From Ranitomeya imitator (taxonomy: Eukaryota), in assembly GCF_032444005.1 (NCBI RefSeq), contig NC_091284.1, forward strand, positions 542,872,001 through 542,936,000: 64,000 bases of DNA, given 5' to 3'. The notes beneath the pieces were generated by a model that saw only the letters and a list, made by a program, of their open reading frames with translations, was not told the DNA's origin and did not search any database. Positions 4,896 to 5,553 of the stretch are shown here, in pieces; the stretch's first letter is position 1, and every line of letters begins with the position of its first letter. The position numbers and the translations under genes are program-made.

Positions 4896-5250
4896 CTGTG
4901 GTGCTGCGCTGCTTCTTGGCTCCCCACTTCACCTCAGGGTGCACGATTAGGATCCGCTGAGCCCCTTGAAGGGGCGTGGCATACGAGACTAAGAGATCAC
5001 CATCCTCATCTTCCTCGTCGTCCGTGTCCTCCTCTGTGGAGCTCCAGCCTCCGTCCCCTCCTCGCTGCCGGCCCCCGGGTCTCTTGGCACTGCAGTGGTG
5101 GGTGCCGCTCCACAGGCACCGCGGCCTCGGCGCACGGAGCACGTCTCTGCTGCAGGGGAGCGGGAGGCGCCCGCCATAGACTCCCTGCTTGGCGGCGACG
5201 CTGCGGGAATGACATCTGACAAGACTCCAGAACGTCCGCGGGAGCAGCAT
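4896..5250 (-). CDS. GTPBP6: GTPBP6 coding exon 1 (355 bp; mitochondrial HflX-family GTPase)
   Basis: MLLPRTFWSLVRCHSRS... is an Arg/Ser-rich presequence-like N-terminus, followed by acidic EEDTDDEEDED and QRILIVHPEVKWGAKKQ (human QRVCLVHPDVKWGPGKS). Donor AG|GTAATG at 4896/4895; phase 1 joins exon 2 in frame. An in-frame upstream ATG at 5346 is an alternative start. Confidence 0.9.
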
Positions 5251-5422
5251 GCTTTCTGGTGCCGGGTCACATGACCTCAAAGCAAAGCACAACAACTTGC
5301 AACTATAGGCGTGTCCGAGCAATGTCCTCCCCTTCCCGCTGGTCATGTGATCGTGACGTCACGTCTTCTGGCTGGCGTGCTTCAGGTCACCCTGGGAGGC
5401 CGGAGGTCGGCGGCGGCTGAAG
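5251..5422. promoter_or_regulatory. Putative bidirectional GC/CpG-rich promoter shared by GTPBP6 and MRPL43
   Basis: 172 bp between divergent ATGs. Contains palindromic CRE CGTGACGTCACG (5352-5363) and E/M-box-like TCACATGA (5267-5274) and TCATGTGA (5343-5350). Confidence 0.7.
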
Positions 5423-5553
5423 ATGACAGCACGGGGCGGCCCCAGCCGCTTCCTGCAGAGTGTGCTGCAGAATGGAGTCGGGAGGTACGTGTGCCAGCTC
5501 AAGAGGCTCACTCTGGTCTTCAGCAAGGACGCGCAGCCCTCCCGGGGAGCCAG
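5423..5553 (+). CDS. MRPL43: MRPL43 exon 1 (131 bp); absent from the ORF track
   Basis: [43 protein letters not shown](R) matches human [44 protein letters not shown]. Donor AG|GTAGGT at 5553/5554. Confidence 0.96.

Follow-up and report, generated by a model that had tools for sequence, protein, structure and literature searches.

Bidirectional gene pairs of vertebrates are usually ancient and conserved. Their CpG-island promoters separate divergent genes whose starts are within 1 kb of each other (e.g. Trinklein et al. 2004). In mammals, TWNK (PEO1/C10orf2) and MRPL43 form a bidirectional pair (Tyynismaa et al. 2004 and Meersseman et al. 2014, as cited in PMC9818230 and by Chen et al.), which is cited as linking mtDNA replication to mitoribosome production via a joint promoter. 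In frogs, both genes have been described by Chen et al. 2024 (bioRxiv 10.1101/2024.10.27.620512), who presented the western chorus frog genome and counted twnk and mrpl43 among the 'rebel' BUSCO genes. According to that preprint, the two genes are adjacent on element H in archaeobatrachians; in Hyloidea twnk was transposed to element A, and in Neobatrachia mrpl43 underwent several transpositions, the linkage being 'lost in neobatrachian frogs'; frog macrosynteny is conserved, with mrpl43 and twnk as single-gene exceptions. For GTPBP6, a late role in large-subunit maturation and the relation to HflX are established. The earlier note on the present DNA, made from its letters, had allowed that a pairing of gtpbp6 with mrpl43 might already be documented. 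The break-up of twnk and mrpl43 is indeed in Chen et al. 2024, which contains no occurrence of gtpbp6 and no description of new head-to-head partners, and a literature search found no other paper that pairs gtpbp6 with mrpl43.

We analysed a window of 64,000 nucleotides from Ranitomeya imitator (assembly GCF_032444005.1, contig NC_091284.1, forward-strand positions 542,872,001 to 542,936,000), in which gtpbp6 and mrpl43 lie head-to-head. The start codons diverge, with the gtpbp6 ATG at 5250 on the minus strand and the mrpl43 ATG at 5423 on the plus strand, and enclose exactly 172 bp, so that the starts lie less than 1 kb apart; coordinates and translations thus confirmed the divergent first exons, ATGs and spacing given in the earlier note. 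The public annotation agrees, placing a 550-aa HflX-type GTPase gene head-to-head with a 4545-bp mrpl43 whose span corresponds to 5423-9967. The coding exons were searched one by one, each separately. On the plus strand, mrpl43 comprises coding exon 1 (5423-5553), whose translation is identical to residues 1-43 of the annotated protein P0001; exon 2 (8363-8469), which is flanked by an AG acceptor and a GT donor and matches Pfam PF05047 (L51_S25_CI-B8) with an E-value of 3.6e-8; and exon 3 with the TAA stop (9738-9967, stop at 9965-9967), which matches the mL43 chains of solved mitoribosomes in the PDB with an E-value of 3e-28. The splice sites are canonical GT/AG throughout, and the exon-by-exon product equals the annotated 155-aa R. 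imitator mL43 (P0001), its L51_S25_CI-B8 fold and sequence identifying it as an mL43/MRPL43 ortholog. The 3' UTR on the same strand (9968-10150) has poly(A) signals near 10138 and 10146 and contains a block conserved with Eleutherodactylus coqui (10061-10124); comparison with the 3' flanks of Mixophyes and Xenopus gave no detectable similarity.

On the minus strand, gtpbp6 is represented by two coding exons, exon 1 (4896-5250, from the ATG at 5250 to a GT donor at 4895) and exon 2 (1030-1167, with an AG acceptor before 1167 and a GT donor after 1030). The translation of exon 1 resembles residues 52-115 of human GTPBP6 (PDB 7of2_C) with an E-value of 5e-6, and exon 2, encoding the start of the HflX N-terminal domain, resembles residues 116-163 with an E-value of 7.5e-11, so that both exons are collinear with the human protein. 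Exon 2 shares 83% identity with its E. coqui counterpart; in the library-wide search, all of its relatives bearing names were 'putative GTP-binding protein 6', and the representatives that the exhaustive search yielded came from fish, lancelet, invertebrates and whales. The annotated R. imitator product of 550 aa carries GTP-bdg_N, GTP-bdg_M and MMR_HSR1, that is, the N-terminal, middle and G domains of an HflX-type GTPase, the G domain lying outside the window. Intron 1 (1168-4895, minus strand) is filled with repeats and measures 3.7 kb, compared to ~0.5 kb in E. coqui. It contains two inverted copies (1697-2200 and 4215-4716) with 83% identity over 522 bp, accompanied by proline-rich short tandem repeats, and the very high contig depth over this intron, which stems from repeat copies, marks a very abundant repeat family.

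Assembled contigs from sequencing runs cover the junction at both the DNA and the RNA level. A DNA contig (run X1, record 7) bridges 4821-5493, which includes both first exons, and differs from the window by four single bases; it therefore comes from another haplotype or individual. Run X17 was classed as RNA from its behaviour, and its contigs show neither true transcript starts nor expression levels. One of them (record 16) covers 5393-5554 and then continues with the opening bases of mrpl43 exon 2, and so represents spliced mrpl43 mRNA, which confirms the donor at 5553/5554. On the gtpbp6 side, the one exon 1 contig seen in X17 covers 5032-5272, and a third RNA contig (record 9, X17) stops exactly at the exon 2 acceptor, 1167. 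Transcription and splicing are taken as shown for gtpbp6 as well as for mrpl43. The facing ends of the gtpbp6 and mrpl43 contigs, 5272 and 5393, leave 120 bp between them and are contig ends, distinct from mapped transcription start sites. The end at 5272 also bears on the gtpbp6 gene model. In the public annotation, translation begins at an upstream ATG at 5346, within the spacer, adding the stretch 5251-5346. The ATG at 5250, not that at 5346, aligns with the annotated E. coqui start from residue 1, and the Bufo and E. coqui proteins have 517 and 513 aa, respectively, compared to 550 aa in the R. imitator model. Given this alignment, these lengths and the RNA contig end, the ATG at 5250 is better supported, and the R. 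imitator model is probably 32 codons too long at its start.

The 172-bp spacer (5251-5422), a candidate bidirectional promoter, has a GC content of 0.60 and a CpG observed/expected ratio of 0.78. It sits in a CpG island over both first exons (4750-5500), with a GC content of 0.60-0.65 and an observed/expected ratio of 0.78-0.88, compared to 0.05-0.4 in the introns further on. A motif scan revealed no TATA box in the spacer, and both genes flanking it are transcribed, as seen from their RNA contigs in run X17. The scan further revealed two E-box-like sites in the CpG-island region and a palindromic CRE, TGACGTCA, at 5354-5361, within a 20-mer at 5347-5366; the E. coqui gtpbp6/mrpl43 spacer has CGTCACGT at the position aligned with this CRE. 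The corresponding ATG-to-ATG distances are 129 bp for E. coqui and 186 bp for Bufo bufo. Local alignment of the Ranitomeya and E. coqui spacers delineated a conserved block with an ETS core at 5304-5344 (TATAGGCGTGTC ... CCTCCCCTTCC), which scores z 6.2 against shuffles and recurs in a second alignment (A2). Altogether, this GC-rich and TATA-less spacer, with its CRE, E-box-like sites and conserved block, most likely acts as a bidirectional promoter for the two genes, as judged from its sequence features. A TCCGGGTCAC-like motif was spotted by eye in the promoters of all four species, an anecdotal observation.

To place this arrangement among amphibians, we located the loci encoding exact mL43 proteins and read the called neighbours, using X. 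laevis as the Xenopus comparison locus. The partner of mrpl43 is twnk, head-to-head, in six lineages: Rhinatrema (caecilian), Ambystoma (axolotl), Xenopus laevis, Pelobates, Mixophyes and Hyperolius. The Twinkle proteins of these pairs have AAA_25/DnaB_C domains and 671-701 aa, and two of the lineages, Mixophyes and Hyperolius, are neobatrachians outside Hyloidea that retain the pair. An HflX-type GTPase gene (gtpbp6) is instead head-to-head with mrpl43 in three hyloid families, represented by Ranitomeya, Bufo bufo and E. coqui, the last in two independent assemblies. Beyond these loci, TWNK and MRPL43 are on equally long contigs in lungfish, coelacanth, sharks, Amia and a turtle, and on unequally long contigs, taken as different chromosomes, in Hyla, Eleutherodactylus, Engystomops and Anomaloglossus. 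Lithobates pipiens shows a third site, in which mrpl43 spans 19.4 kb with its introns kept, is flanked by the 3' ends of rps25 and ccdc84, and lacks a divergent partner. The pairing of gtpbp6 with mrpl43 is hence derived and lineage-specific, and the earlier note was right both in setting it apart from the ancestral arrangement and in proposing a swap of promoter partner, from twnk in the six other lineages to gtpbp6 in the hyloids. The frog phylogeny is the accepted one. Since Mixophyes and Hyperolius keep the old pair and both the hyloid and the Lithobates sites lack twnk, mrpl43 left twnk at least twice, independently. It is syntenic within a lineage and on another chromosome between lineages, the behaviour that defines a 'rebel' gene.

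A hyloid twnk was found at a new site as well. In E. coqui, it lies on a chromosome other than that of mrpl43, head-to-head with pes1 (pescadillo) and 294 bp apart from it (9707-10000 of locus L005). Within 10 kb of this twnk no mrpl43 remnant was found, and in Xenopus and Mixophyes no pes1 gene lies that close to either twnk or mrpl43. The view that TWNK was merely left behind with another promoter arrangement does not hold, as twnk is elsewhere and paired with PES1 in E. coqui and has itself moved according to Chen et al. 2024. Two CACGTG E-boxes are present on the pes1 side of the new spacer, and an Mpv17/PMP22-family gene lies downstream of E. coqui twnk. Mixophyes and Xenopus have a conserved twnk-proximal part in the ancestral spacer (z 15), which comprises paired ETS sites, a CCAAT box and a YY1-like site, and this block is still recognisable beside E. 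coqui twnk (z 6.3). Its persistence there means that the spacer once shared by both genes was split. Comparison of the mrpl43-proximal spacer between the derived (hyloid) and ancestral loci gave no significant similarity (z -0.2 to 3.2). Moreover, the CRE-centred 20-mer of the Ranitomeya spacer (5347-5366) matches 18 of 20 positions in the E. coqui pes1/twnk spacer, ~111-131 bp upstream of the twnk ATG (L005), a similarity that may be due to chance, to convergence or to promoter pieces that were copied with an overlap.

Further comparison of the mrpl43 loci bears on how the gene changed place. In X. laevis, Mixophyes, E. coqui and the window alike, the mrpl43 coding sequence is divided into three exons at identical codon positions, and the protein list has one mrpl43 locus per assembly. 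These identical junctions at ancestral and derived loci show a move at the DNA level rather than through mRNA, which excludes reverse transcription and bears out the proposal that both introns were kept. A retrocopy or processed gene is rejected, the two introns being at their ancestral positions. Downstream of mrpl43, two non-coding blocks at 3-7 kb are conserved between X. laevis (19541-19748 and 18899-19014 of locus L001) and Mixophyes (25285-25492 and 23333-23442 of locus L002), with 76% and 73% identity. Neither was found in the 54 kb downstream in the window or in the 10 kb downstream in E. coqui, an absence that could reflect divergence instead of a small moved segment. The next gene downstream of mrpl43 is the same in both hyloids, Ranitomeya and E. 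coqui. This gene, termed gene X, encodes 260 aa with no Pfam hits, and starts 7.2 kb downstream of mrpl43 in E. coqui; its promoter and first coding exon in the window (27213-27560, plus strand, start MAAVSQSQPLRQPCLYHSSSK at 27447, with a copy at 36320-36667) share 75% identity over 377 bp with E. coqui (22626-23002 of locus L004). The absence of the ancestral blocks, together with gene X as downstream neighbour, would fit a gene-sized segment that landed beside gtpbp6.

The surroundings of gene X are repetitive. A 9,107-bp unit occurs twice in tandem, at 22541-31646 and 31648-40753, with a single internal mismatch, and carries Ty3/Gypsy-type open reading frames along with the first exon of gene X. 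Both copies hold identical runs of 186 N (26998-27183 and 36105-36290), and the tandem copy has the look of a duplication that was either made in the assembly or arose very recently. In general, the 54 kb downstream of mrpl43 consist largely of mobile elements (43944-49114, 55581-61226 and 16226-17933), among them a Ty3/Gypsy-type element with an uninterrupted protease-RT-RNaseH-integrase frame and gag-like frames, and an L1-type LINE with ORF1 and an endonuclease-RT ORF2, in addition to RT fragments.

Taken together, we propose that mrpl43 alone moved as DNA to the gtpbp6 CpG island in the hyloid stem and formed a bidirectional pair there, an account that we consider likely as a whole. In this scenario, the three-exon gene would have changed place along the hyloid stem lineage, by a move or by copying, as a genomic segment with its introns. 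It would have quit its head-to-head site beside twnk for the CpG island at the 5' end of gtpbp6, on a different chromosome. The outcome would be a compact divergent pair, with start codons 172 bp apart in Ranitomeya, 129 bp in Eleutherodactylus and 186 bp in Bufo, that has presumably been retained since the common ancestor of the three hyloid families. We infer that mrpl43, rather than gtpbp6, was the mover, with the preprint and parsimony pointing to a gtpbp6 that stayed put, and that the moved segment was only gene-sized. A single-gene move is favoured because mrpl43 of Lithobates moved alone too, and because the preprint reports single-gene exceptions.

Why the pair was kept is a separate matter from how it arose. 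Open CpG-island promoters may simply tolerate insertions, in which case the match between mL43 and a GTPase of the same subunit would be coincidental and would bring no meaningful co-regulation; we regard this as a strong contender that falls a little short of an even chance. Pescadillo is a factor of the cytosolic 60S subunit, not a mitochondrial one. The new partner of twnk is accordingly non-mitochondrial, and the ranid mrpl43 works unpaired at its rps25/ccdc84 site, both of which favour mere tolerance and weaken the candidate idea of a selected coupling between a protein of the mitoribosomal large subunit and a GTPase that acts in the assembly of this subunit. However, the spacer has remained short (129-186 bp), with a conserved block, over three hyloid families, as would be the case for a constrained shared promoter. 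A short conserved spacer is equally expected of two abutting core promoters.

With regard to how the pair arose, a chromosomal rearrangement might have broken inside at least two bidirectional promoters, so that larger blocks rather than single genes swapped partners, for instance through a reciprocal exchange of an old twnk/mrpl43 pair with an old gtpbp6/pes1 pair. Such an event would explain why both products are tight head-to-head pairs (129-186 bp for gtpbp6/mrpl43, 294 bp for pes1/twnk), a single reciprocal exchange would account for both at once, and the twnk-proximal promoter block that remained with twnk points to a break inside the old spacer. But the conserved blocks downstream of the ancestral mrpl43 did not travel along, the 10 kb around twnk and mrpl43 contain no pes1 in Xenopus or Mixophyes, and Chen et al. 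2024 describe frog macrosynteny as conserved, with twnk and mrpl43 each moving in isolation, so that we hold a rearrangement to be improbable. In a further reading of comparable, low probability, both halves of the old pair, which is shared from sharks to mammals, would have been copied out with overlapping pieces of their promoter, and each would have docked anew, head-to-head, at the promoter of a gene for large-subunit ribosome biogenesis. By this account, likewise doubtful, mrpl43 would have docked to gtpbp6 (mitochondrial large subunit) and twnk to pes1 (cytosolic 60S), and the shared CRE 20-mer would be the trace. If true, it would imply that promoter docking is biased or selected for and rewires co-regulation, with a mitoribosomal protein coupled to its own assembly GTPase. 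Finally, an assembly misjoin between the two first exons, which the earlier note had raised, and an ancestral vertebrate origin of the pairing are both rejected as having next to no chance, since, even though a suspicious 9.1-kb exact tandem duplicate elsewhere in the window indicates that the assembly is not flawless, the same junction is found in four assemblies of three species (R. imitator, Bufo bufo and the two of E. coqui), the DNA contig over 4821-5493 spans it with four differing letters, and twnk pairs with mrpl43 in six non-hyloid amphibian lineages.

Frogs are a natural experiment on the TWNK-MRPL43 link: the pair was dissolved at least twice, and Mixophyes and Hyperolius, as close relatives, keep the old one. 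In hyloids, each of the two genes has a new divergent partner, which offers a direct test of whether promoter sharing matters. A second testable question is whether the new sharing between mrpl43 and gtpbp6 yields co-expression of two genes of the mitoribosomal large subunit. The analysis adds gtpbp6/mrpl43 and pes1/twnk as head-to-head landing sites, the ranid mrpl43 site between rps25 and ccdc84, and the twnk-mrpl43 linkage retained in Mixophyes and Hyperolius. Two corrections follow from it, namely that the linkage is not lost in all neobatrachians and that the start of the R. imitator gtpbp6 model is probably set 32 codons too far upstream.

In comparison with the 'rebel' genes of Chen et al. 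2024, mrpl43 shows the same mobility, the present locus being its landing site in Hyloidea; however, the loss of linkage that they described for neobatrachians is contradicted by Mixophyes and Hyperolius. Similar to the mammalian TWNK-MRPL43 pair, the hyloid pair is a tight head-to-head arrangement that includes mrpl43, a short CpG-rich spacer and a mitochondrial partner. The two differ in that the hyloid partner is gtpbp6, not twnk, and in that the hyloid spacer has no significant similarity to the ancestral one, whose block of paired ETS sites, CCAAT box and YY1-like site stayed with twnk. The locus also resembles bidirectional promoters in general, with divergent genes of housekeeping or mitochondrial function, less than 200 bp between the start codons, a CpG island and no TATA box. 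Compared to such pairs, however, gtpbp6/mrpl43 is dated and lineage-specific, and it replaced an older pairing.
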